Shown here: in pieces, positions 908 to 37,374 of the stretch
Numbering within the stretch: the stretch's first letter is position 1
Layout: each line of letters starts with the position of its first letter
NCBI RefSeq assembly: GCF_040938485.1
Contig: NW_027270916.1
Coordinates: 2,170,001 to 2,234,000, forward strand
Length of the DNA stretch: 64,000 nucleotides
Direction: 5' to 3'
From: Diadema antillarum
Taxonomy: Eukaryota
Position numbers and translations under genes: made by a program
The notes under the pieces: model-generated
What the model saw: only the letters and a program-made list of their open reading frames with translations
The model's database searches: none
What the model was told of the DNA's origin: nothing

Positions 908-1066
908 GTAGTCTGTGTAGTTGTTGCGTGTGTGTGTGAGTATGCTGTGTTTGTGTACGTGAGTGTTTGTTCCACACACACACTCTCTCTCTTCGATCAC
1001 ATCCTTTGACAAGCACTAACAGATAAATAGACAGATAAAACGTTATTTGTAAGTGGCATAATATAC

Positions 1067-1072
1067 TTTATT
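1067..1072 (-). terminator. Poly(A) signal AATAAA of SGNH copy 1 (homologous sites at 5175, 13363, 22893, 36628, 43184, 46713, 51927)
   Basis: Plus-strand tttatt about 150 nt past the stop codon in all 8 gene-bearing units. Confidence 0.7.
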
Positions 1073-1222
1073 ACAGAAATCCAGCAACATGCTGTTACAA
1101 AACATAAATTACAAATGTACAATGGGCATAGATAAAAAGTCCACAGTTCCAGCCCATGAAAAGTAAACTGCAGTCGTCGAGCATCCACATAATGTGAGTC
1201 GCACGTAGTAAAATCTCTGATT

Positions 1223-1846
1223 TTAGTCCATCTTGTACGCTTTCATCACGGCGCCTCTGATGGTGCGGAAGTACCTCAGCATGCCTGCCTCGTTGAAGTG
1301 AACTCCATCCTGCATGAAGAGCTTGCTGTGGTTCTGGGTGAAGGCGCGATGCCGCCAGAAGTGGACGTTGGGTAAGTTTTCCAGGAACTTGGCGAGGAGT
1401 CGGTTGGTGTCGTGCACGGCTGCGTTGAAGTTGGTCTTCCACTTGGGGACGAAGAGCCGGGGGATGATGCCGCATACGATTACGTGACGGACTCCAGGAA
1501 TGCGAGCTACGCGGAGAGCAAGATCTAGGAGAGCGGTGACTGTGGATTCGGTGGTTGCACCTAGTTCGCAGAGATCGTTAGAGCCGAGATCGATGACCAC
1601 GGCGTCGGGCGACAGCTCCCAGACGAGATCGAGCTGAGATGAGGCTGAGAAGACGTTACCAGGCTGGGTATGTCCCACGTCGTGAAGGAAGGCGAGTACA
1701 GAAGACTTCTCTAGAGCCAGGTTGCTTCGGGCTGGGTCCCGCTCGATGAAGCTGTTGAGGCTGCCAATGTAGCTGTGCCCGAGGACCAAAACGACAGGTG
1801 GTTCGCGATCGGACTCGCAGCTTCCAGTTGAGCCTCCAATCGACAT
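1223..1846 (-). CDS. SGNH/GDSL-family hydrolase, copy 1 (207 aa, intact)
   Basis: Block I VLGHSY (S25), block III DLGSND (N90), block V DGVH (D180, H183). Intronless, with a promoter upstream and AATAAA downstream. Confidence 0.9.
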   Translation of the reverse strand: MSIGGSTGSCESDREPPVVLVLGHSYIGSLNSFIERDPARSNLALEKSSVLAFLHDVGHTQPGNVFSASSQLDLVWELSPDAVVIDLGSNDLCELGATTESTVTALLDLALRVARIPGVRHVIVCGIIPRLFVPKWKTNFNAAVHDTNRLLAKFLENLPNVHFWRHRAFTQNHSKLFMQDGVHFNEAGMLRYFRTIRGAVMKAYKMD

Positions 1847-2007
1847 CGTGATGACTTGGGTTTGAACTCGAGGATGTAGCGGGAGAAGCTGGGTGTAGAG
1901 TTCTCGATGAGCTGTTCGATGGCGGAGACTGATGGCAATGATGATAGCAGATCGTTCTCGTTGGAGGTTCTAGATGAGTTTGATCGAAATCGCCATAAAC
2001 TCTCAAC

Positions 2008-2212
2008 TATTTAAGTGCAACGCGAAGGTGAAATCCAGTTTCCCGCCATCGTTCTGATTGGCTAAACTAATGTACCAATGAGCGGAGACTGGTTTGAGAC
2101 AATAGGGAAAGGCATCCCATTGTTATCTAATTAACTCGCTCGGAAAGGGGCAGGGATGCGATCCCGCGGACCAGCGTGGAACAATAGATCGCTTAAACGG
2201 TTCGGACAATAG
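2008..2212 (-). promoter_or_regulatory. Putative promoter of SGNH copy 1 (repeated upstream of copies 3-8)
   Basis: TATA-like TTAAATA 2008-2014; E2F TTTCCCGC 2039-2046; CCAAT boxes 2057-2061 and 2075-2079 in opposite orientations; ACAAT Sox/HMG motifs near 2099, 2119, 2181 and 2206. Confidence 0.65.
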
Positions 2213-2617
2213 AGGGGCAGCAGATCTGGGTTCGTGTAAGACCATGGCACGCGCTTGAGCAGAGGACTGTCATAGTGAAGTATTCCATCAAGACTTCACG
2301 AATTCGCCCAGTCCTATAGCTTGTTTAACTGAAATATTGCACATTACATTTTCGGAAATCATGCGTAGTACCTCTTAATTATCAGCTAAAAACACGCACA
2401 AACAGTCACACACACACACACTGTCACGTGTACACATACTCAAATACCAACAAAAAAACAAACAAACAAACAAAACAAAAACAAAACCAAGACCCAGACT
2501 GCCCATCTCTTAAAGCTTCGTGCCATTTGGGTTTCCCATGAGTATGAAATGATTATATAAATTCAACGCAATATGTCCACTTTTTAGTATATACTATATA
2601 TGTAAATATTCACGCAC

Positions 2618-2618
2618 A

Positions 2619-2690
<72 letters not shown>

Positions 2691-2692
2691 CA
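2618..2692. repeat. (CA)n(TA)n compound microsatellite (equivalent tracts near 17125, 18110, 24250, 44735)
   Basis: Seen directly; it sits at the same position in each unit. Confidence 0.95.
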
Positions 2693-4749
2693 TATTTACT
2701 TATCTATTTATTCATCTATTTATTTACGTCGGACAGCGACGTGGGGCATTTACTCATTTGTCTGAAAACTTAACATGCATCCGTTTTACTGGAAAACAAG
2801 TGACAACGGAGATTCTTGCACCGTTTAAACATAATTTAGTATGTGTATGTGTGTGATGCCGGGGTGCTATTGGTGATGTTGTGATACGCTCGGGGATACA
2901 TTTCACATCACCTATAGTTTATATACTAGTAACGTACCAGTCCGTTTTGCATATCTGTAATCAAATAATATATTGTCCAAATGAGTCAGTTAGTCAAATC
3001 ATCGCAATAAGGAAACTATTTTATACATTTAGTATTTCTTACAATATTTGATAGCCACAGATGAAGGCTCTTAAGTTTGTGAGTAGCTTGATTTTATGCA
3101 ACTACCGTGTAGTCTGTGTAGTTGTGTATGCGTATGTGTGTTTGTTTGTGTGTGCACCCTCCTTCCATTCTTTTTTTTTTTCTCTCTCTCTCTCTCCTTT
3201 CACTTCTTTCGACACCCAATGCACGGCACTTTTAACGATGAAACGACAGATGAAATACAGACGAAAGGTTGGCGTGCAAATTGATAATGGTGTGGCATAA
3301 CTTATTACAGAAATCCAGCTACATGCTGTTACAAGATTATCAACTACGAACGTACAAACTCGATGGTGAAATCCAGTTTCCCGCATCGTACTGATTGGTT
3401 AAACTAATGCGTAGTACCTCTTTAATTATCAGCTAAAACACTCACAAACACTCACATATGCACACATACTCATTACCAATCGAAAAAACAAACAAACAAG
3501 ACACATGGTGCTCATCACTAAAGAGCTTCTCGCCACGTGGGTTTCTCTTGAATATAAGATTATTATATATATAAATTCGACGCAATTATTTCTACTTTTC
3601 CTTCATAATGAGTACTAAGCTTTCCTCTATCAGAAAGCAGGGGCATGTTACTCATAAAGTAATTTTATTGAATTTCAAGTTTATACCCATGCCTTGGCGA
3701 CCTTTTGTAAAAACCTAAGTATAGACCACCTGTTTTTGTTTCCCTTTCTTTCTTTGTTATGCCTGTCTTTAGTTTGTTTTCTTGCCCGTTCCGTCCTTGC
3801 TTTTGTTCTTGTCCTTGTCATAGTCCTTTCGTTCTGTCTGTTTCGCTTGACGTCATGATTTCAACATTTTCATACATGGAGTCCTTGACGGATCTTGAGA
3901 TGCCCTCATCTCCGAGAGTAAGTCACAAAATTTACAAGGTATGCTTCTCTTGTGAATTCCTATTTTCCATATACGGTTAAAAAATAAAATTGTATTTGCT
4001 TACCTGTTTATCTATCGAAATACAAAGTTAATGCAATATATTACTATAATTGTATCCATGCTTGTTGAAGCTTATTTGATTCAAAATTCCTTAAAATATT
4101 CTGCACTTATGAAAGCGATACGTATATTACTTTGTATCACTTTATATGGAAATGAAACCATTTGAATTTCAATTTGAAATGTATCTAATGTGCACTTGAG
4201 AGGATTGTGACAGAGAGATCAATGAAACTGATACAGAATAAATGAAAGATTACATACATGCTGTGCCCATAGAAAAATGATGATTGAAACAAAATAGGTT
4301 TAGAATAAACTGGAAATATATCAAAAGTGGTTTGCTGACAGTTGGGATATATCTATGTAAAATATAAGCTTAAGTTCACCGAGTGCTTGCATTATACATT
4401 TTCTCTACTGTAGTATTCATTGCGAGTTTTGATCATTGCGTATGTCAAAATCATGTTATGCCCCGTTTGCCTAGATCATTAAAAGAAGTAAAATCAACTG
4501 TACTGTAACTGCCCGTTCTGTATATGTAGAGCCTGAATGTTGTCGGCTAGTCGTATACACATGACAAATTCTAAAATTTACACAACAGCCGTATCCTTTG
4601 CTGTTATGTATGTAACCATAGTACAGGAAGCTATGAAGCCTAAATTTCGGGACTTACTCAACTAATTTGAATGATATTTTGTATGGTTTCCAATTTATCT
4701 TACTCAATTCATCCAATAAAGAAACGTAATATTTTATTATACATCTTGT

Positions 4750-4870
4750 GGGGGCGCTGTGGTATAAAGTGGATACAATCCCCTCCCAGTCATTGGACAA
4801 GGTTTTTTTTACCCACCATGTCCCTCTCAACTTAGGTGTATAAATGGGGACCTGGCAACGCTAGGTAAAG
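4750..4870 (+). mobile_element. Degenerate tRNA-derived SINE-like remnant built into some units (also about 12923-13040, 36216-36330, 42770-42890)
   Basis: tRNA-like head ggggcgctgtggtataaagtgg (A-box-like) and ccctctcaacttaggtgtataaatgggg, which resembles from recall a common invertebrate SINE core. No clear B box. Confidence 0.4.
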
Positions 4871-5315
4871 GTAGGCTATAGCAGTGGCAACATCGAAGAC
4901 GGTACCATGAATAAATAGTACCTTATTATTATCATCATTGTTTTATTAAATATTTCATAAAGAAAGTCAAGTGAGTCGCTTGTTATCAAAATTATGAAAG
5001 TGCAGTTGTACTGTAGTCTGTGTAGTTGTTGCGTGTGTGTGTGAGTATGCTGTGTTTGTGTACGTGAGTCTTTGTTCCACACACTCTCTCTCTCTCTTCG
5101 ATCACATCCTTTGACAAGCACTAACAGATACATAGACAGATAAAACGTTATTTGTAAGTGGCATAATAATATACTTTATTACAGAAATCCAGCAACATGC
5201 TGTTACAAAACATAAATTACAAATGTACAATGCACATAGATAAAAAGTCCACAGTTCCAGCCCATGAAAAGTAAACTGCAGTCGTCGAACATCCACATAT
5301 TATGTGAGTCTGATT

Positions 5316-5698
5316 TTAGTCCATCTTGTAAGCTTTCATCACGGCGCCTCTGATGGTGCGGAAGTACCTCAGCATGCCTGCCTCGTTGAAGTGAACTCCA
5401 TCCTGCATGAAGAGCTTGCTGTGGTTCTGGGTGAAGGCGCGATGCCGCCAGAAGTGGACGTTGGGTAAGTTTTCCAGGAACTTGGCGAGGAGTCGGTTGG
5501 TGTCGTGTACGGCTGCGTTGAAGTTGGTCTTCCACTTGGGGACGAAGAGCCGGGGGATGATGCCGCATACGATTACGTGACGGACTCCAGGAATGCGAGC
5601 TACGCGGAGAGCAAGATCTAGGAGAGCGGTGACTGTGGATTCGGTAGTTGCACCTAGTTCGCAGAGATCGTTAGAGCCGAGATCGATGACCACGGCGT
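5316..5698 (-). pseudogene. SGNH hydrolase copy 2, 5'-truncated (codons ~82-207 only; catalytic Ser lost)
   Basis: Near-identical to the 3' part of copy 1. Homology stops at 5698, where foreign RNase H sequence begins. Confidence 0.9.
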
Positions 5699-6270
5699 TC
5701 GCGGACACTCGGTGAGATCGTGCGTGTGTTGACATCTGATTTCTTGATTGCAGTAGGCGCAGTCTGTTGATTTCTCTATGATCTGTCGGATGGTCTTGGC
5801 TTTCGTCCTGATCCTATTGATGTAGTACTGAGTTCTCCTTGGTAGCCTGTTGAGTGTTTCCTTCGATTCTCTGGTATTGTGTAGGCCTGTGTTCCACTTC
5901 AGTGAGTCGCTCTGGCTGTACCGGATGATGTTCCTCCATCTGGCCTCTGCTATCTGTCGGAAGTGTGTCTTGGTTTGGCGTTTGCTAATCCTGATGACGA
6001 CGTCTGGTACTGGTTTCTGAGTTCCCGTCTTGGCTGCTGCGTCTGCTTCCTCATTTCCTGGTATTCCGATGTGGCTTGGTATCCAGTTGATGACGTACTT
6101 CTTGTTGGTCGATCGCATGTTCTGTTGGATGTCTTTGTTGAGTCGTAGGTTGTCCCGATGTGGTTTCCTGATGTTCTCGATGGCGCCTTGGCTGTCTGTG
6201 TGGATGACGATGATGTCCTCAGGCTGGGTCTTGGAGTCGATGATGGCTTCTCTGATGGCTGCGAGTTCAG
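5699..6270 (-). mobile_element. Internal fragment of a non-LTR retrotransposon ORF2: RNase H C-terminal part plus CCHC finger (I-group-like)
   Basis: One open frame: HAELAAIREA...IHTDSQGA...WIPSHIGIPGNEEADAAAK...CAYC...HDLTECP. Confidence 0.88.
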
Positions 6271-6897: not shown

Positions 6898-7729
6898 TGT
6901 GGGTACTATTGGTGATGTGATACGCTCCGGATATATAACGCACCCGTCCGTTTTGCATATCTATAATCAAATAGTATACTATCCAAATGAGTCAATTAGT
7001 CAGATCATCGCAATGAAGAAAATATTTTCACATATTTACTATTTTTCTATAATATTTCATATCCACAGATGAAGCCTTGAATGTTTGTGTGTCGCTTGAT
7101 ATTATGCAACCACCGTAGTCTGTGTAGTTGTGTATGCGTGTGTGTGTTTGTTTGTGTGTGTTTTTTTGTGTGTGCACCCCGTTCCATACTTTTTTTCTCT
7201 CTCTCTTCTTTCACATCTTTCGACACCCACTGCACAGCACTTTTAATTATGAAACGACAGATGAAATACAGACGAAAAGTTGGCGTGCAAATTGATAATG
7301 GTGTGGCAAAGCTTATTACAGAAATCCAGCGACATGCTGTTACAGGAGTATCAATTACGAACGTACAAACTCGAAGGTGAAATCCAGTTTCCCGCCATTG
7401 TTCTGATTGGTTACACTAATGCACCAATGAGCGTAGACTTGTTTGACACAATAAGGGAAGCCATCCCATTGTTATCTAATCAACTCGCTCGGAGAGGAGC
7501 GAAGATGCGATCCCGTGGACCAGCGTGGAACAATAGATTGGTTAAACAGTTCGAACAATGACGGGGCAAGCAGATCTGGGTTCGTGGAGGACCATGGCAC
7601 GCGATCGAGAAGGGGACTATCATAGTGAAGTATTCCATCAAGACTTCACGAATTCGCCCAGGCCTCTAGCTTATTTAACTGAAATTTTGCACATTTTCGG
7701 AAATCATGCGTAGTACCTCTTTAATTATC

Positions 7730-8960
7730 CAGGGACAAGCTCTCGAATGGTTTAAATCATACCTATCACACCATTCACAGTCTGTTCTTTTGAATGGTGT
7801 CACATCGTCTTCAAAGCCATTAGGCTGTGGTGTACCTCAAGGCTCTGTTGGCGGGCCCACCCTTTTTTCTATCTATTTGATCGGTCTGCGGAAAATATTT
7901 CAAAGGCATTCTGTTCGGTATCATCTATATGCAGACGACATACAAGTTTTTGTATCTTTTCCACCACATCAAATCCAAGCATCTCATGCACTGCGCTGTC
8001 TAGAAAATTGCATCATTGATATTGATGCTTGGATGAGGTCTAACTCATTGTCTCTAAACCACAGCAAGTGTGAATTTATCCTTTTTGGTTCTAAATCTCT
8101 CTTGAATAAGTTGGATATTAATTGTATTTCGATTGTAGGTAATGATATTCCTCTGTCAAAGTCATGTCGCAATCTGGGTTTTATGTTTGACTCTCACATG
8201 GCTATGTCTGATCAAATCACCAACATTTCTAAATCAGTCCGTTATCAATTGCGCAATATTGGTTTTATTCGCAAGTATTTGACTCGCTCTGCCATGGAAA
8301 AAACTTGTTCATGCACTTATTTCTTCACGCCTTGATTTCGGTAATGGTTTGTTTTTCAATCTACCAAACTCGCAAATTGCCCACTTACAAAAGCTACAAA
8401 ATGCCGCTGCACGTATTGTTTCTTTGTCAAGTAAACGCAGTCATATCACACCTATCCTGAAGAGTCTTCATTGGTTGCCTGTACAGGAGCGTATTCGGTT
8501 TAAGATACTTCTTTTGGTTTATCACGTTATTGAGGGAACAGCTCCTGATTACAATGTTTGTTTGTTTCGTCAATACCAACCTTCACGAACTCTTCGATCC
8601 TCAACTTCAGGTCTCTTACATATTCCGTTTTCTAGGAAATCTTGGGGGGGAACGAGCTTTCGCTCACGCTGGACCAACACTGTGGAATTCACTTCCTCGT
8701 GAGCTGAAAGACTCAAGCTCTATAACATCTTTCAGGAGTAATTTAAAATCCTATTTGTTTAGCAGTGCATTTTGAAGACCAGTGTCTTTTGAAGACAGAC
8801 TTTCATGTCTTTTTTTTCTGCTTCTTCATCTTCTATTACGGTGATGTACTTGTTTCTTCAGTCTGTTTGCTTTGATGTACAATTGTAAAGCGCCTTGAGC
8901 ATTTAATCAAAGTGGAGAACGGCGCTATAGAAATTGTATGTATTATCATTATTATTATTA
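7730..8960 (+). mobile_element. 5'-truncated L2-clade LINE (RT core to 3' end) with (TAT)n tail
   Basis: GVPQGS, YADD, LNHSKCE, LQNAAAR, HITPILKSLHWLP, GPTLWNSLP motifs. Two +1 frameshifts in homopolymers (about 8300 and 8648). Inserted into ctctttaattatc|agctaaaa with attatc on both sides. Confidence 0.9.
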
Positions 8961-26654: not shown

Positions 26655-29600
26655 CACGAATTCGTCCAGTCCTATAGCTTAATTGTTTAAGTGAAATATT
26701 GCACATAACATTTTCGGAAATCATGCGTAGTACCTCTTTAATTATCAGCTAAAACACTCACAAACACTCTCACATGTGCACACATACTCAATACCAATCG
26801 AAAAAAAAAAAAACAAGACACATGGTGCTCATCACTAAGAGCTTCTCGCCACGTGAGTTTCCCATGAATATGAAATGATTGTATTTATAAATTCAACGCA
26901 ACTATTTCTACTTTTCTTTCATAATGAGTACTAAGCTTTCCTCTACCAGAAAGTAGGGGCATTTCTCATAAAGTAATCATGTCCGTAATGAGGAAATATG
27001 TGAAGGAATTTCTGAAGTGTTAAGGAATTTCTGAAGTGTTGTGTAATTCCTTGAAAAAAAAAAGAAACTTTCTTTGCTTTGGTGGGAAAAAAAAATATCA
27101 CGGGTATCTTGAACGTCGATGTTCTACACCATAATAATTATCATAACATGCATAGTCATATAGATTTAATTAATGAAGCAACCACGAACCATTATCTATT
27201 GCAAACAATGTTACACTGACGAAATTCATGACAATTTAAATCTTTACCGTGTACAGTATGTAAATGTGGTGCATGAATGTGTGTGTATGTAAAAGTCTTT
27301 GTATGAATATGTGACTATTACATAATATGTTTGCGCGTATGTACGTGAATGTATGTGCTTTTATAATGTGCTACTGTTAGAAGTGTGGCAGAGTGATCCA
27401 TGAAACTGATACAGAATAAATGAAAGATTACATGCTTACAAACTGGGCCTCTAGGAAAAATATGGTGATGTTGGCGATTGGAACTAAATAATATTGGATG
27501 ACCTTTAAAGACATTAGCAGTGGTTTGCCGGTAGTGAAAATAGATGAATAATAGATAAACATACTACATTTTGAGTATTGATAACTAATGGATTTATTGA
27601 TATTTTTACAATTCGTTTATAGTGCTCTTTTGTGTGGCTCCTTAAGTTCCGCACGGCTAAATTCACAAAGTTTTCAACTTCGAGTGTTTACAATAATGCA
27701 TTTATGTATTGTTTGCGAGCTTCATGGTATTATGTACATCGAAATTATTTTAATTGAATATTCACACTATATGAAAACATGCAGGCCTATATNNNNNNNN
27801 NNNNNNNNNNNNNNNNNNNNNNNNNNNNNNNNNNNNNNNNNNNNNNNNNNNNNNNNNNNNNNNNNNNNNNNNNNNNNNNNNNNNNNNNNNNNNNNNNNNN
27901 NNNNNNNNNNNNNNNNNNNNNNNNNNNACGTGGACCAATTAAAGAATCTTGACTCATAATTATGTCTGAAAACTTCACATGCACCCGTTTTACTGGAAAA
28001 TAATTGACAACGAAGATTATTGTACCTTTTAAACACATTAGCATGTGTATGTGTGTGTGTGTGTGTTGTGGGTACTATTGGTGATGTTGTGATACGCTCG
28101 GGGATATATAACGCACCCGTCCGTTTTGCATAGCTATAATCAAATAGTATACTATAGTATACTATCCAAATGAGTCAATAAGCCAAATCATCGCAATAAA
28201 GAAAACATTTTTATATATTTACCATTTTTCTATAATATTTCATATCCACAGATGAAGCCGTGAATGTTTGTGTGTCGCTTGATATTATGCAACCACCGTA
28301 GTCTGTGTAGTTGTGTACGCGTGTGTGTTTTTGTGTGTGCACCCCCTTCCATACTTTTTTTTTCTCTCTCTCTCTCTTCTTTCACATCTTTCGAGCTATG
28401 CGGAGGGCAAGATCTAGGAGGGCAGTGACTGTGGATTCGGTGGTTGCACCTTGCTCGGACACCCTCTGAAATGACAGATGAAATACAGACGAAAAGTTGG
28501 CGTGCAAGTTGATAATGGTGTGGCAAAGCCTATTACAGAAATCCAGCGACATGCTGTTACAGGAGAATCAATTACGAACGTACAAACTCGAAGGTGAAAT
28601 CCAGTTTCCCGCCATCGTTCTGATTGGTTAAACTAATGCACCAATGAGCGTAGAGTGGTTTGACACAATAGGGGAAGCCATCCCATTGTTATCTAATCAA
28701 CTCGCTCGGAGAGGAGGGGGGATATAATTCCGTGGACCAGCGTAGAACAATAGATCGCTTAAACGGTTCTGACAATTGAGGGGCGAGCAGATCTGGGTTC
28801 GTGGAGGACCATGGCACGCGATCGAGAAGAGGACTATATCGTAGTGAGGTATTCCATCAAGACTTCACGAATTCGCCCAGGCCTATAGCTTGTTTAACTG
28901 AAATTTTGCACGTTTTCGGAAATCATGCGTAGTACCTCTTTATTTATCAGCTAAAACACGAACAAACACTCACCCCCCCCCCCCCCCACACACACACACG
29001 TGCACACATACTCAAATACCAATCGAAAAAACAAACAAACAAGACACTCACGAATTCGTCCAGTCCTATAGCTTAATTGTTTAAGTGAAATATTGCACAT
29101 AACATTTTCGGAAATCATGCGTAGTACCTCTTTAATTATCAGCTAAAACACTCACAAACACTCTCACATGTGCACACATACTCAATACCAATCGAAAAAA
29201 AAAAAACAAGACACATGGTGCTCATCACTAACAGCTTCTCGCCACGTGAGTTTCCCATGAATATGAAATGATTATACTTATAAATTCAACGCAACTATTT
29301 CTACTTTTCTTTCATAATGAGTACTAAGCTTTCCTCTACCAGAAAGTAGGGGCATTTCTCATAAAGTAATCATGTCCGTAATGAGGAAATATGTGAAGGA
29401 ATTTCTGAAGTGTTGTGTAATTCCTTTAAAAAAAAGAAACTTTCTTTGCTTTGGTGGGAAAAAAAATATCACGGGTATCTTGAACGTCGATGTTCTACAC
29501 CATGATAATTATCATAACATGCATAGTCATATAGATTTAATTAATGAAGCAACCACGAACCATTATCTATTGCAAACAATGTTACACTGACGAAATTCAT

Positions 29601-32600
29601 GACAATTTAAATCTTTACCGTGTACAGTATGTAAATGTGGTGCATGAATGTGTGTGTATGTAAAAGTCTTTGTATGAATATGTGACTATTACATAATATG
29701 TTTGCGCGTATGTACGTGAATGTATGTGCTTTTATAATGTGCTACTGTTAGAAGTGTGGCAGAGTGATCCATGAAACTGATACAGAATAAATGAAAGATT
29801 ACATGCTTACAAACTGGGCCTCTAGGAAAAATATGGTGATGTTGGCGATTGGAACTAAATAATATTGGATGACCTTTAAAGACATTAGCAGTGGTTTGCC
29901 GGTAGTGAAAATAGATGAATAATAGATAAACATACTACATTTTGAGTATTGATAACTAATGGATTTATTGATATTTTTACAATTCGTTTATAGTGCTCTT
30001 TTGTGTGGCTCCTTAAGTTCCGCACGGCTAAATTCACAAAGTTTTCAACTTCGAGTGTTTACAATAATGCATTTATGTATTGTTTGCGAGCTTCATGGTA
30101 TTATGTACATCGAAATTATTTTAATTGAATATTCACACTATATGAAAACATGCAGGCCTATATNNNNNNNNNNNNNNNNNNNNNNNNNNNNNNNNNNNNN
30201 NNNNNNNNNNNNNNNNNNNNNNNNNNNNNNNNNNNNNNNNNNNNNNNNNNNNNNNNNNNNNNNNNNNNNNNNNNNNNNNNNNNNNNNNNNNNNNNNNNNN
30301 NNNNNNACGTGGACCAATTAAAGAATCTTGACTCATAATTATGTCTGAAAACTTCACATGCACCCGTTTTACTGGAAAATAATTGACAACGAAGATTATT
30401 GTACCTTTTAAACACATTAGCATGTGTATGTGTGTGTGTGTGTGTTGTGGGTACTATTGGTGATGTTGTGATACGCTCGGGGATATATAACGCACCCGTC
30501 CGTTTTGCATAGCTATAATCAAATAGTATACTATAGTATACTATCCAAATGAGTCAATAAGCCAAATCATCGCAATAAAGAAAACATTTTTATATATTTA
30601 CCATTTTTCTATAATATTTCATATCCACAGATGAAGCCGTGAATGTTTGTGTGTCGCTTGATATTATGCAACCACCGTAGTCTGTGTAGTTGTGTACGCG
30701 TGTGTGTTTTTGTGTGTGCACCCCCTTCCATACTTTTTTTTTCTCTCTCTCTCTCTTCTTTCACATCTTTCGAGCTATGCGGAGGGCAAGATCTAGGAGG
30801 GCAGTGACTGTGGATTCGGTGGTTGCACCTTGCTCGGACACCCTCTGAAATGACAGATGAAATACAGACGAAAAGTTGGCGTGCAAGTTGATAATGGTGT
30901 GGCAAAGCCTATTACAGAAATCCAGCGACATGCTGTTACAGGAGAATCAATTACGAACGTACAAACTCGAAGGTGAAATCCAGTTTCCCGCCATCGTTCT
31001 GATTGGTTAAACTAATGCACCAATGAGCGTAGAGTGGTTTGACACAATAGGGGAAGCCATCCCATTGTTATCTAATCAACTCGCTCGGAGAGGAGGGGGG
31101 ATATAATTCCGTGGACCAGCGTAGAACAATAGATCGCTTAAACGGTTCTGACAATTGAGGGGCGAGCAGATCTGGGTTCGTGGAGGACCATGGCACGCGA
31201 TCGAGAAGAGGACTATATCGTAGTGAGGTATTCCATCAAGACTTCACGAATTCGCCCAGGCCTATAGCTTGTTTAACTGAAATTTTGCACGTTTTCGGAA
31301 ATCATGCGTAGTACCTCTTTATTTATCAGCTAAAACACGAACAAACACTCACCCCCCCCCCACACACACACACGTGCACACATACTCAAATACCAATCGA
31401 AAAAACAAACAAACAAGACACTCACGAATTCGTCCAGTCCTATAGCTTAATTGTTTAAGTGAAATATTGCACATAACATTTTCGGAAATCATGCGTAGTA
31501 CCTCTTTAATTATCAGCTAAAACACTCACAAACACTCTCACATGTGCACACATACTCAATACCAATCGAAAAAAAAAAAACAAGACACATGGTGCTCATC
31601 ACTAACAGCTTCTCGCCACGTGAGTTTCCCATGAATATGAAATGATTATACTTATAAATTCAACGCAACTATTTCTACTTTTCTTTCATAATGAGTACTA
31701 AGCTTTCCTCTACCAGAAAGTAGGGGCATTTCTCATAAAGTAATCATGTCCGTAATGAGGAAATATGTGAAGGAATTTCTGAAGTGTTGTGTAATTCCTT
31801 TAAAAAAAAGAAACTTTCTTTGCTTTGGTGGGAAAAAAAATATCACGGGTATCTTGAACGTCGATGTTCTACACCATGATAATTATCATAACATGCATAG
31901 TCATATAGATTTAATTAATGAAGCAACCACGAACCATTATCTATTGCAAACAATGTTACACTGACGAAATTCATGACAATTTAAATCTTTACCGTGTACA
32001 GTATGTAAATGTGGTGCATGAATGTGTGTGTATGTAAAAGTCTTTGTATGAATATGTGACTATTACATAATATGTTTGCGCGTATGTACGTGAATGTATG
32101 TGCTTTTATAATGTGCTACTGTTAGAAGTGTGGCAGAGTGATCCATGAAACTGATACAGAATAAATGAAAGATTACATGCTTACAAACTGGGCCTCTAGG
32201 AAAAATATGGTGATGTTGGCGATTGGAACTAAATGATATTGGATGACCTTTAAAGACATTAGCAGTGGTTTGCCGGTAGTGAAAATAGATGAATAATAGA
32301 TAAACATACTACATTTTGAGTATTGATAACTAATGGATTTATTGATATTTTTACAATTCGTTTATAGTGCTCTTTTGTGTGGCTCCTTAAGTTCCGCACG
32401 GCTAAATTCACAAAGTTTTCAACTTCGAGTGTTTACAATAATGCATTTATGTATTGTTTGCGAGCTTCATGGTATTATGTACATCGAAATTATTTTAATT
32501 GAATATTCACACTATATGAAAACATGCAGGCCTATATNNNNNNNNNNNNNNNNNNNNNNNNNNNNNNNNNNNNNNNNNNNNNNNNNNNNNNNNNNNNNNN

Positions 32601-33350
32601 NNNNNNNNNNNNNNNNNNNNNNNNNNNNNNNNNNNNNNNNNNNNNNNNNNNNNNNNNNNNNNNNNNNNNNNNACGTGGACCAATTAAAGAATCTTGACTC
32701 ATAATTATGTCTGAAAACTTCACATGCACCCGTTTTACTGGAAAATAATTGACAACGAAGATTATTGTACCTTTTAAACACATTAGCATGTGTATGTGTG
32801 TGTGTGTGTGTGTTGTGGGTACTATTGGTGATGTTGTGATACGCTCGGGGATATATAACGCACCCGTCCGTTTTGCATAGCTATAATCAAATAGTATACT
32901 ATAGTATACTATCCAAATGAGTCAATAAGCCAAATCATCGCAATAAAGAAAACATTTTTATATATTTACCATTTTTCTATAATATTTCATATCCACAGAT
33001 GAAGCCGTGAATGTTTGTGTGTCGCTTGATATTATGCAACCACCGTAGTCTGTGTAGTTGTGTACGCGTGTGTGTTTTTGTGTGTGCACCCCCTTCCATA
33101 CTTGTTTTTTTTTCTCTCTCTCTCTTCTTTCACATCTTTCGAGCTATGCGGAGGGCAAGATCTAGGAGGGCAGTGACTGTGGATTCGGTGGTTGCACCTT
33201 GCTCGGACACCCTCTGAAATGACAGATGAAATACAGACGAAAAGTTGGCGTGCAAGTTGATAATGGTGTGGCAAAGCCTATTACAGAAATCCAGCGACAT
33301 GCTGTTACAGGAGAATCAATTACGAACGTACAAACTCGAAGGTGAAATCC
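26655..33350. repeat. Near-identical tandem triplication of a ~2.4-kb higher-order unit
   Basis: The marker cacgaattcgtccagtcc recurs at 26655, 29049 and 31423. All three units share the same gap position and the same SGNH mini-insert. Confidence 0.9.
28392..28459 (-). pseudogene. 68-bp internal SGNH fragment inserted in a geneless unit (repeated at 30771-30838 and 33140-33207)
   Basis: Matches copy 4 at 23319-23386 at 67 of 68 positions. Confidence 0.92.
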
Positions 33351-36783: not shown

Positions 36784-37374
36784 TCAGTCCATCTTGCAAG
36801 CTTTCATCACGGCGCCTCTGATGCTGCGGAAGTACCTCAGCATGCCTGCCTCGTTGAAGTGAACTCCATCCTGCATGAAGAGCTTGCTGTGGTTCTGGGT
36901 GAAGGCACGATGCCGCCAGAAGTGGACGTTGGGTAAGTTTTCCAGGAACTTGGCGAGGAGTCGGTTGGTGTCGTGCACGGCTGCGTTGAAGTTGGTCTTC
37001 CACTTGGGGACGAAGAGCCGGGGGATGATGCCGCATACGATTACGTGACGGACTCCAGGAATGCGAGATACGCGGAGGGCAAGATCTAGGAGAGCGGTGA
37101 CCGTGGATTCGGTGGTTGCACCTAGTTCGCAGAGATCGTTAGAGCCGAGATCGATTACCACGGCGTCGGGTGACAGCTCCCACACGAGATCGAGCTGCGA
37201 TGAGGCTGAGAAGACGTTACCAGGCTGGGTATGTCCCACGTTGTGAAGGAAGGCCCCGCTCGGGTCCCGCTCGATGAAGCTGTTGAGGCTGCCAATGTAG
37301 CTGTGCCCGAGGACCAAAACGACAGGTGGTTCGCGATCGGACTCGCAGCTTCCAGTTGAGCTTCCAATCGACAT
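36784..37374 (-). CDS. SGNH hydrolase copy 5 (196 aa; in-frame net loss of 11 aa)
   Basis: ARSNLALEKSSVL is replaced by SG; S, N, D and H motif residues are retained. Confidence 0.8.
   Translation of the reverse strand: MSIGSSTGSCESDREPPVVLVLGHSYIGSLNSFIERDPSGAFLHNVGHTQPGNVFSASSQLDLVWELSPDAVVIDLGSNDLCELGATTESTVTALLDLALRVSRIPGVRHVIVCGIIPRLFVPKWKTNFNAAVHDTNRLLAKFLENLPNVHFWRHRAFTQNHSKLFMQDGVHFNEAGMLRYFRSIRGAVMKACKMD

Follow-up and report, generated by a model that had tools for sequence, protein, structure and literature searches.

How does a hydrolase gene that resembles an accessory gene of a retrotransposon come to stand in a sea urchin genome with no retrotransposon around it? The question is raised by a gene at positions 1223-1846, on the minus strand, of the window analysed here, a 64-kb stretch of the Diadema antillarum genome (contig C28:2170001-2234000). 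A first-pass annotation of the window had read the product as the SGNH domain of a Ngaro-type element, a retrotransposon with a tyrosine recombinase (YR), from which the rest of the element had been lost. The gene belongs to a family that is repeated in tandem in Diadema and in at least two other sources, probably sea urchins as well. Its probable history is that of an element-derived, Ngaro-type SGNH esterase that has been domesticated, amplified in tandem and kept under purifying selection.

The gene and its signals

The open reading frame (ORF), the first of eight copies in the window, is intronless and runs intact from ATG to stop, encoding 207 amino acids. All the SGNH motifs named in the first-pass annotation are found in it: GHS, within LGHS (Ser25), GSND (residues 88-91), C.IIPR (125-130), FWRHR, DGVHFN (180-185) and RYFRTIRGA. 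The four catalytic blocks (GHS, Gly63, GSND and DGVH) are present, with Ser25, Gly63, Asn90, Asp180 and His183 all in place. The protein matches the Pfam families PF00657 (Lipase_GDSL, E = 1.3e-10) and PF13472 (Lipase_GDSL_2, E = 8.2e-9), both above the curated cut-offs.

The N-terminus, MSIGGSTGSCESDREPP, is of Ser, Gly and acidic character over its first 17 residues and lacks a hydrophobic run; the protein therefore has no signal peptide. Residues 17-207 align to homologues with only short gaps, none of them intron-like. Both features had been claimed in the first-pass annotation, as had the difference in composition between the GC- and CpG-rich ORF (GC content 0.57, GC at third codon positions 0.71, CpG observed/expected ratio 0.99) and its AT-rich flanks (GC content 0.35 and CpG ratio 0.83 in the spacer at 2600-5000).

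A putative RNA polymerase II promoter core is situated upstream of the ORF at 2007-2079 (minus strand). It consists of an inverted CCAAT box (ATTGG, 2079-2075), a CCAAT box (2061-2057) and a TATA-like box, TTAAATAG, at 2014-2007. The probable 5' untranslated region (UTR), at 1847-2006 on the same strand, is open in the frame of the ORF and has no conserved start codon. The probable 3' UTR, at 1040-1222 (minus strand), has an AATAAA signal at 1072-1067, 150 nt past the stop codon, that is conserved in every gene-bearing unit. The CCAAT and TATA-like boxes and the AATAAA are reasonable polymerase II signals, and presumably are used as such.

The array gene is annotated only as an 'uncharacterized protein'. 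NCBI models of 222-234 residues reach into the 5' UTR, whereas other members of the urchin-type family begin at the MS... ATG. The longer protein was rejected, since the extensions are translated 5' UTR or promoter sequence that other family members do not conserve. A scan of the whole window against Rfam at the gathering threshold gave no RNA family, and a scan for bacterial-type promoters and terminators, which is irrelevant for a eukaryote, gave no enrichment.

Fold and predicted activity of the product

The AlphaFold2 model of the protein has a mean predicted local distance difference test score of 95.1 and a predicted template modelling score of 0.90, the first 17 residues being the only stretch of low confidence. 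As modelled, the array protein has the three-layer alpha/beta/alpha SGNH fold. Foldseek gave 157 matches at E <= 0.001, and all 50 of the PDB matches listed are SGNH/GDSL-type esterase or acyltransferase domains, or scaffolds designed on one. The best of them are the alpha subunits of PAF-AH Ib (TM-score 0.62-0.65, 18-22% identity), followed by bacterial GDSL acylhydrolases and sialate O-acetylesterases. In a phmmer search of the PDB, PAF-AH Ib and IAH1 chains were absent at E <= 1, and no bacterial chain scored better than E = 0.003. The array protein shares with the PAFAH1B2/3 proteins (PDB 1WAB, 1FXW, 1VYH) a compact cytosolic SGNH fold of ~210 residues and the Ser-His-Asp triad of an acetyl esterase, but at this level of identity it is not their orthologue: the likeness to PAF-AH Ib is one of fold and mechanism.

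Among 107 aligned members of the clade to which the protein belongs (see below), G23 and H183 are invariant, and G63 is invariant in a separate alignment of homologues. In at least 90% of the 107 members H24, S25, G88, N90, D91, R130, N148, D180, G181, G188 and R197 are conserved. The signature residues of the clade, H24, R130, N148 and R197, are all found in the window protein.

The product is probably a cytosolic, single-domain SGNH serine esterase of roughly 23 kDa. In the mechanism proposed, Ser25, activated by His183 and Asp180, would attack the ester carbonyl, and Gly63 and Asn90 would make up the oxyanion hole. Judging from the model, the most likely activity is the hydrolysis of short acyl or acetyl esters by the Ser25-His183-Asp180 triad. 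The PAF-AH Ib alpha-like fold suggests a short acyl (acetyl) ester as substrate, while the clade-wide presence of His24, Arg130, Asn148 and Arg197 suggests that the substrate is the same as that of the element-borne enzymes described below. The two clade-wide arginines give a hint that it may be anionic, which would fit the binding of acidic phospholipids by the ZfL2-1 esterase (PMC3905857).

Relatives carried by Ngaro-type elements

Relatives were sought by an exhaustive HMMER profile search over 1.84 billion representatives. It yielded 4891 clusters at E <= 1e-3, of which 1708 reached E <= 1e-10; stand-alone proteins of about 190-210 residues make up nearly all of them. The G-H-S form of block I is found in 139 of the 178 proteins of the comparison set and is therefore a real signature of a clade, here called the GHS clade. 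Its members with a species name are proteins of scallop, oyster, mussel, a coral and siboglinid annelids; they often belong to large multi-member clusters, in which truncated forms are numerous. The next-nearest relatives beyond the urchin-type family, at 27-38% identity, likewise have GHS and are retrotransposon ORFs.

The genomic context could be read for relatives from five samples (L013, L017, L072, L073 and L074), which are 27-35% identical to the array protein. In all five the SGNH ORF is found on one strand with a gag-like ORF, reverse transcriptase (RT), RNase H and YR, in that order. The C-terminus of the gag-like ORF of L017 is rich in Cys and His. In L013 an RT-like start runs straight into the recombinase, a junction that is read as a probable internal deletion. 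Upon comparing L072, L073 and L074 each with itself, a repeat A1 was found just upstream of the SGNH ORF and repeats B1-A2-B2 past the recombinase, A1 and A2, and B1 and B2, being 98.6-100% identical. The same order is present in L017 in a looser form. Split direct repeats are the defining feature of Ngaro and PAT-like elements, some of the former being known to carry an SGNH ORF (PMC9210276, PMC6681497). The relatives that have A1...B1-A2-B2 repeats together with a YR are therefore Ngaro-type elements, in which SGNH is the first ORF. The three elements with near-identical repeats (L072:6598-14391, L073:7572-14600 and L074:7580-14286) are apparently young; their length, measured on L074, is about 6.7 kb. 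Short tandem repeats form a block between their SGNH ORF and gag.

Some members of the GHS clade have more than one SGNH domain. A single frame of 2341 residues (P0026, L063:801-7826) on a 7.9-kb metagenome contig has six SGNH domains of the clade in series, and parts of it match the Pfam family OSK, the SGNH-like domain of Oskar, at E = 4e-10. Another protein, P0030 (514 residues), has two such domains.

Diadema has Ngaro-like elements of its own, which were examined in 3.5-kb pieces. The recombinase of L017 gave 65 matches dispersed across many Diadema contigs, and the resident elements share 35-44% identity with L072 and L017 in their RT/RNase H and YR. A scan with PF13472 showed that several of these YRs are followed, at a distance of roughly 0.4-0.7 kb, by an SGNH ORF, as at C11:1999861-2001392 (minus strand) and C241:1215033-1216546 (plus strand), and also on contigs C1868, C1842, C115 (two kinds) and C1925. 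In the YR-linked SGNH proteins block I reads G-D-S, and their match to the array protein is no better than E = 2e-6. The assignment of the gene to the Ngaro-associated type in the first-pass annotation thus stands in so far as its nearest outside relatives lie in elements with split direct repeats and a YR. However, these are not the GDS-type elements resident in Diadema, and the subtype is the one in which SGNH comes first.

A further multicopy PF13472 ORF of Diadema lies in an open frame of roughly 457 residues (C295, C420, C64 and others). It is possibly, at a guess, an ORF1 esterase of a long interspersed nuclear element (LINE); it matches the array protein at E = 0.01 only and has a very long, unreliably placed branch in a quick tree.

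Phylogeny and proposed origin

Trees were calculated with FastTree for 178 sequences and with IQ-TREE (LG+C20, quick search) for 52. When rooted on the GDS-type outgroup, they separate the GHS clade from the GDS-type element SGNH of Diadema with a support of 99. The urchin-type sequences form one clade (support 100), having a stem of 0.84-1.06 and inner branches of 0.01-0.2, compared with 0.4-1.4 in the others. This clade is nested in the GHS radiation, the inner node having a support of 86-87, and at least three branches outside it hold the five element-linked exemplars. On grounds of parsimony, the ancestor would have been element-borne and would have escaped into the host once, in the urchin lineage.

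The source, as proposed here, would be the accessory SGNH ORF of a Ngaro-type retrotransposon of the GHS subtype, in which it is the first ORF and lies just inside A1. The ORF would have parted from gag, RT/RNase H and recombinase in an ancestor common at least to Diadema and Strongylocentrotus. Once free, it would have gained a promoter (two CCAAT boxes and a TATA-like box) and a poly(A) signal, and would then have been amplified into head-to-tail arrays.

The urchin-type family and its conservation

A word-index search gave relatives at 67-77% identity, including a protein of S. purpuratus (XP_011665236.1, LOC105438741, 77%) and many ENA/Logan sequences. The tandem contigs that encode proteins in this range of identity appear to come from other sea urchins. 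One of them, L062, has six gene copies in 15.7 kb, arranged in units of 2.0-2.3 kb that are 98-99.7% identical. Trees group the copies by source, as expected under concerted evolution or recent re-amplification. The paralogues are alike within a source and different between sources, which fits unequal crossing-over or gene conversion.

The ratio of nonsynonymous to synonymous substitution rates (dN/dS) is 0.15-0.25 among the Diadema paralogues and 0.08-0.16 between sources, where synonymous sites are saturated. By these ratios the array protein is clearly under purifying selection.

The promoter region has the same layout in Diadema, L062 and L061: ATTGG, 13-16 nt, CCAAT, about 30-45 nt and a TATA-like box, with the rest of the spacer diverged. 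In the Tara unit L064, ATTGG is kept and the second box is CCTAT. The regions upstream of the element-borne SGNH ORFs were considered as the source of the promoter and rejected, as no consistent arrangement of dual CCAAT boxes, or of the order ATTGG...CCAAT...TATA-like box, was found in them.

The gene for one family member, P0018, was found on 13 contigs, each about 2 kb long; most come from marine plankton metagenomes and several are labelled Tara. Two pairs that were compared are circular permutations of each other, and one contig has a terminal overlap of 119 nt, giving a tandem (or circular) unit of 1.93 kb. This unit was assembled independently from several plankton metagenome samples. 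P0018 (L064-L071) is 67% identical to the window protein and is otherwise conserved, with G-H-G-H in block I in place of G-H-S-Y. In another member, P0010, the Asp of block V is replaced by N. With the Ser lost in the one and the Asp changed in the other, catalysis may therefore not be the sole property under constraint.

Absence of an element around the arrays

The window was searched by tblastn, at E <= 0.01, with five element exemplars covering gag, RT, RNase H and YR; for YR there were two YR queries and a 300-residue ORF of L072 that bears the recombinase. There was no match in the 64 kb, in agreement with the first-pass annotation, which had seen neither a YR nor a DIRS-type RT. The only RT-like pieces in the window are an RVT_1 fragment at 7706-8335 (plus strand) and an RNase H fragment at 5654-6118 (minus strand). 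At E <= 0.001, YR, gag and DIRS-type RT were also not found in 12 other array loci of Diadema or in L061, L062, L064, L065 and L067.

Searches of the genome covered the whole 1.75-Gb assembly with the array protein, the family profile and a distant relative as queries, scoring only the best first-look candidates. The 19 matches all lie in two places, at C28:2.04-2.22 Mb and C711:0.746-0.773 Mb. The first-pass annotation had noted that a complete Ngaro element with a near-identical ORF elsewhere in the genome would make the gene a recent deletion derivative; the protein and profile searches of the Diadema genome return the two arrays only, and no such element. Nor was a GHS-type SGNH detected outside the arrays in these searches.

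Alternative explanations

Several observations weigh against the history proposed here. The genomic context was readable for five relatives only. The backbone of the SGNH tree is essentially a polytomy and its root is set by an assumed outgroup, so that the tree demonstrates neither the direction of transfer nor the exact sister group. Promoter use, translation and domestication are deduced from conservation, and catalysis by the array protein is a prediction from its sequence. The recent amplification of a repeat with no function for the host would likewise yield tandem copies that are highly similar and have intact ORFs. While 11 of the 19 Diadema matches are full-length without stops, two have a stop and six are truncated. 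The loss of the nucleophile Ser in the P0018 lineage argues that catalysis is not universally required. The "captured, possibly domesticated" enzyme of the first-pass annotation is recognizable in a gene that appears to be element-derived and conserved, but the idea of a single capture gives way to a conserved tandem multigene family.

The arrays might instead be a non-autonomous tandem repeat derived from a retrotransposon, a mini-element or satellite that contains an SGNH ORF without any function for the host. Its spread would be due to unequal crossing-over or to circles that a recombinase inserts into resident copies, and recent amplification or selection at the level of the element would account for the intact ORFs. 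Head-to-tail units that are 93-99% alike, the broken copies and the excess of gene-less over gene-bearing units in Diadema would all fit such a repeat, as would the high copy number implied by the 1.93-kb unit, which assembles in many plankton metagenomes as a tandem or a circle. According to the literature, the elements of the relatives use a circular intermediate and a tyrosine recombinase (PMC9210276, PMC6681497). However, a functionless repeat should not hold its dN/dS at 0.08-0.16 while synonymous sites saturate, nor would it be expected to keep the catalytic residues in most lineages, or the CCAAT/TATA arrangement between sources when the remaining spacer is not conserved. The copies are confined to two places, possibly haplotypes of a single locus, whereas YR elements are dispersed; the arrays show no recombinase or RT and no clear A/B-type split repeats, and the gene-less units are best read as a deletion derivative. 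A repeat of no use to the host is thus unlikely. The direction of transfer could also be reversed, with an old gene of marine invertebrates captured once or more by Ngaro-type elements and the urchin arrays representing its surviving host form. A star-like tree rooted on an assumed outgroup is compatible with this. Retroelements pick up and exchange accessory ORFs, GDSL esterases among them (PMC5408684), and element-free texim-like SGNH genes have been reported in amphioxus, Oikopleura and sea urchin (PMC4021074). Yet every relative with a readable context is element-borne, and these relatives occupy several branches around the urchin-type clade, itself one narrow lineage with a long stem. In Diadema, the GDS-type SGNH beside YR, which forms the next outgroup, is element-borne as well, and the reversed direction appears quite improbable. 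An origin as a conventional host SGNH protein (PAF-AH Ib alpha- or IAH1-like), as the remnant of a LINE ORF1 esterase or as bacterial DNA is hardly credible. It would be in keeping with the PAF-AH Ib alpha subunits and bacterial GDSL acylhydrolases at the top of the Foldseek matches and with a neighbouring Atlas cluster that was automatically named '1-alkyl-2-acetylglycerophosphocholine esterase'. Against it stand the restriction of the PAF-AH Ib likeness to the fold, the poor scores of the bacterial chains, the marginal match of the presumed LINE-type ORFs in the 457-residue frame, and the position of the gene within a 3.1-Mb Diadema contig, with a close counterpart in S. purpuratus. Placement within a conventional host family or a bacterial clade, which the first-pass annotation had given as grounds for abandoning its interpretation, was not obtained.

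A domesticated, element-derived esterase remains the explanation that we favour. It is rather unlikely that echinoids keep the SGNH gene in histone-like arrays to serve a bulk need at one life stage, with a conserved role that may be non-catalytic. If there is a bulk need, it would arise at a stage such as oogenesis, the early embryo or spermatogenesis. If the role is non-catalytic, the protein could be a binding or decoy factor, acting for example against the source Ngaro-type elements; the change from GHS to GHG in P0018 is cited in this respect. In the OSK domain of Oskar the nucleophile Ser has been replaced and the rest of the SGNH-like protein kept.

Comparison with known systems

Accessory SGNH/GDSL esterases occur in Ngaro elements, several LINE clades, rotifer long terminal repeat elements and Penelope-like elements, and the sole role known for them is the lipid binding of one LINE esterase (PMC3905857, PMC5408684, PMC9210276). 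GDSL ORFs are common to several retroelements of rotifers (PMC5408684). The SGNH ORF of Ngaro-like elements, described by Goodwin and Poulter in 2004 as summarized in PMC9210276, is present in DIRS-53_XT and DIRS-54_XT of Xenopus. Like the array gene, it encodes a stand-alone protein of about 200 residues of the same superfamily, and the nearest outside relatives of the array gene agree with the published definition of Ngaro (gag, RT/RNase H, YR and A1...B1-A2-B2; PMC9210276). The array gene differs in lacking a surrounding element and in being tandemly arrayed. Its GHS-type relatives also differ from the published Xenopus elements, and from the YR-linked copies of Diadema, in that SGNH is the first ORF rather than following the recombinase.

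The ORF1 esterase ZfL2-1, from the CR1/L2/RTEX group of LINEs, is catalytically active and binds acidic phospholipids (PMC3905857). Like the element-borne SGNH proteins, it belongs to a retroelement and has a gag-like 5' position there, and it offers a working model for their role. Unlike the stand-alone 207-residue product of the array gene, it is fused to a coiled coil within ORF1p.

The Texim proteins of fish are testis-expressed, multicopy, Y-linked SGNH hydrolases tied to Helitrons, and element-free 'texim-like' sequences have been reported in S. purpuratus together with a Lytechinus transcript (PMC4021074). Compared by description only, Texim and the array family are both small, multicopy SGNH proteins that are patchy in animals and have ties to mobile elements. 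Texim genes, however, have introns and Helitron neighbours, and neither ~2-kb tandem arrays nor a link to Ngaro has been described for them (PMC4021074).

The arrangement of the urchin SGNH genes is that of another kind of family. As is generally known, the early histone genes and small nuclear RNA genes of sea urchins form short, intronless, head-to-tail units, homogenized within a source, different between sources and having CCAAT-box promoters, and the SGNH arrays share these features. They differ in that SGNH would be a mobile-element-derived enzyme and its gene has a poly(A) signal instead of the histone 3' stem-loop. In Diadema, moreover, the number of SGNH copies is modest, and many gene-less units lie among them.

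In the literature searched there was no report of an urchin family nested in a GHS-type, SGNH-first Ngaro subtype, nor of conserved ~2-kb tandem arrays of urchin SGNH genes or the strength of purifying selection on them. The array gene has a good chance of being a domesticated mobile-element gene whose product, in this case, is not a transposase, gag or env but an accessory enzyme. It would add an enzyme derived from a mobile element, and coding for protein, to the short list of sea urchin tandem gene families, and its relatives document a Ngaro subtype with the SGNH gene as first ORF. An esterase that is free of the element, under selection and retains its pocket would give a non-mobile handle on this enzyme, one that avoids the confounds of a multicopy transposon and is testable in a classical embryological model.

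Organization of the array

The array extends head to tail over 908-53390 (minus strand). Gene units, each made up of 3' UTR, ORF, 5' UTR, promoter and upstream modules, are interspersed with about 20 gene-less units. All eight gene copies in the window are on the minus strand, and the five at 1223, 13504, 23039, 46870 and 52096 are intact. Besides copy 1, these are copies 3 (13504-14127), 4 (23039-23662), 7 (46870-47493) and 8 (52096-52719), each of 207 residues; copy 8 is the most divergent in the window, with 93% amino acid identity to copy 1. Copy 2 (5316-5710) is truncated at its 5' end to residues about 78-207, its upstream part being replaced by foreign sequence. The RNase H fragment at 5654-6118 lies in this sequence, in place of the 5' half of the gene. 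Copy 5 (36784-37374; 196 residues) has an in-frame deletion of 11 codons between blocks I and II. Copy 6 (43340-43963) is 98.6% identical in DNA to copy 1 and has a premature TAG after codon 191.

In the gene-less units, which outnumber the gene units in Diadema, the promoter core is joined directly to 3' UTR-like sequence. The fusion is found at 3290-3420 of the window and at about 20 further sites up to 50052. These units are consistent with the amplification of one ~0.9-kb deletion, which would begin shortly before the TATA-like box and extend to ~100 nt beyond the stop. They stand about 1.5 kb away from the 3' end of the gene. Their interpretation as the B1-A2-B2 repeats of a Ngaro element was rejected, because the deletion into the 3' UTR explains them better.

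The matches at C711:746758-773309 have the same order and orientation as those at C28:2044853-2063065, with one plus-strand copy followed by minus-strand copies, and the two plus-strand copies score identically. The C711 set mirrors the first sub-array of C28 and may therefore represent a haplotype left uncollapsed, not a second locus.

The array also contains insertions unrelated to it, the RNase H fragment in copy 2 among them. Another, the RVT_1 fragment at 7706-8335 (E = 5.5e-17), is on the strand opposite to the array and does not match the DIRS-type RT queries. A third, an ORF of 181 residues at 48560-49105 (plus strand), has no Pfam match. Eight runs of N, 135-218 nt long, are situated in the array spacers, outside the gene, promoter and UTRs (11493-11644, 14870-15034, 19700-19882, 27793-27927, 30164-30306, 32538-32672, 38118-38277 and 40269-40486). 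Those that can be placed directly precede the spacer module SPa, which in the two gene units puts them after UP2.

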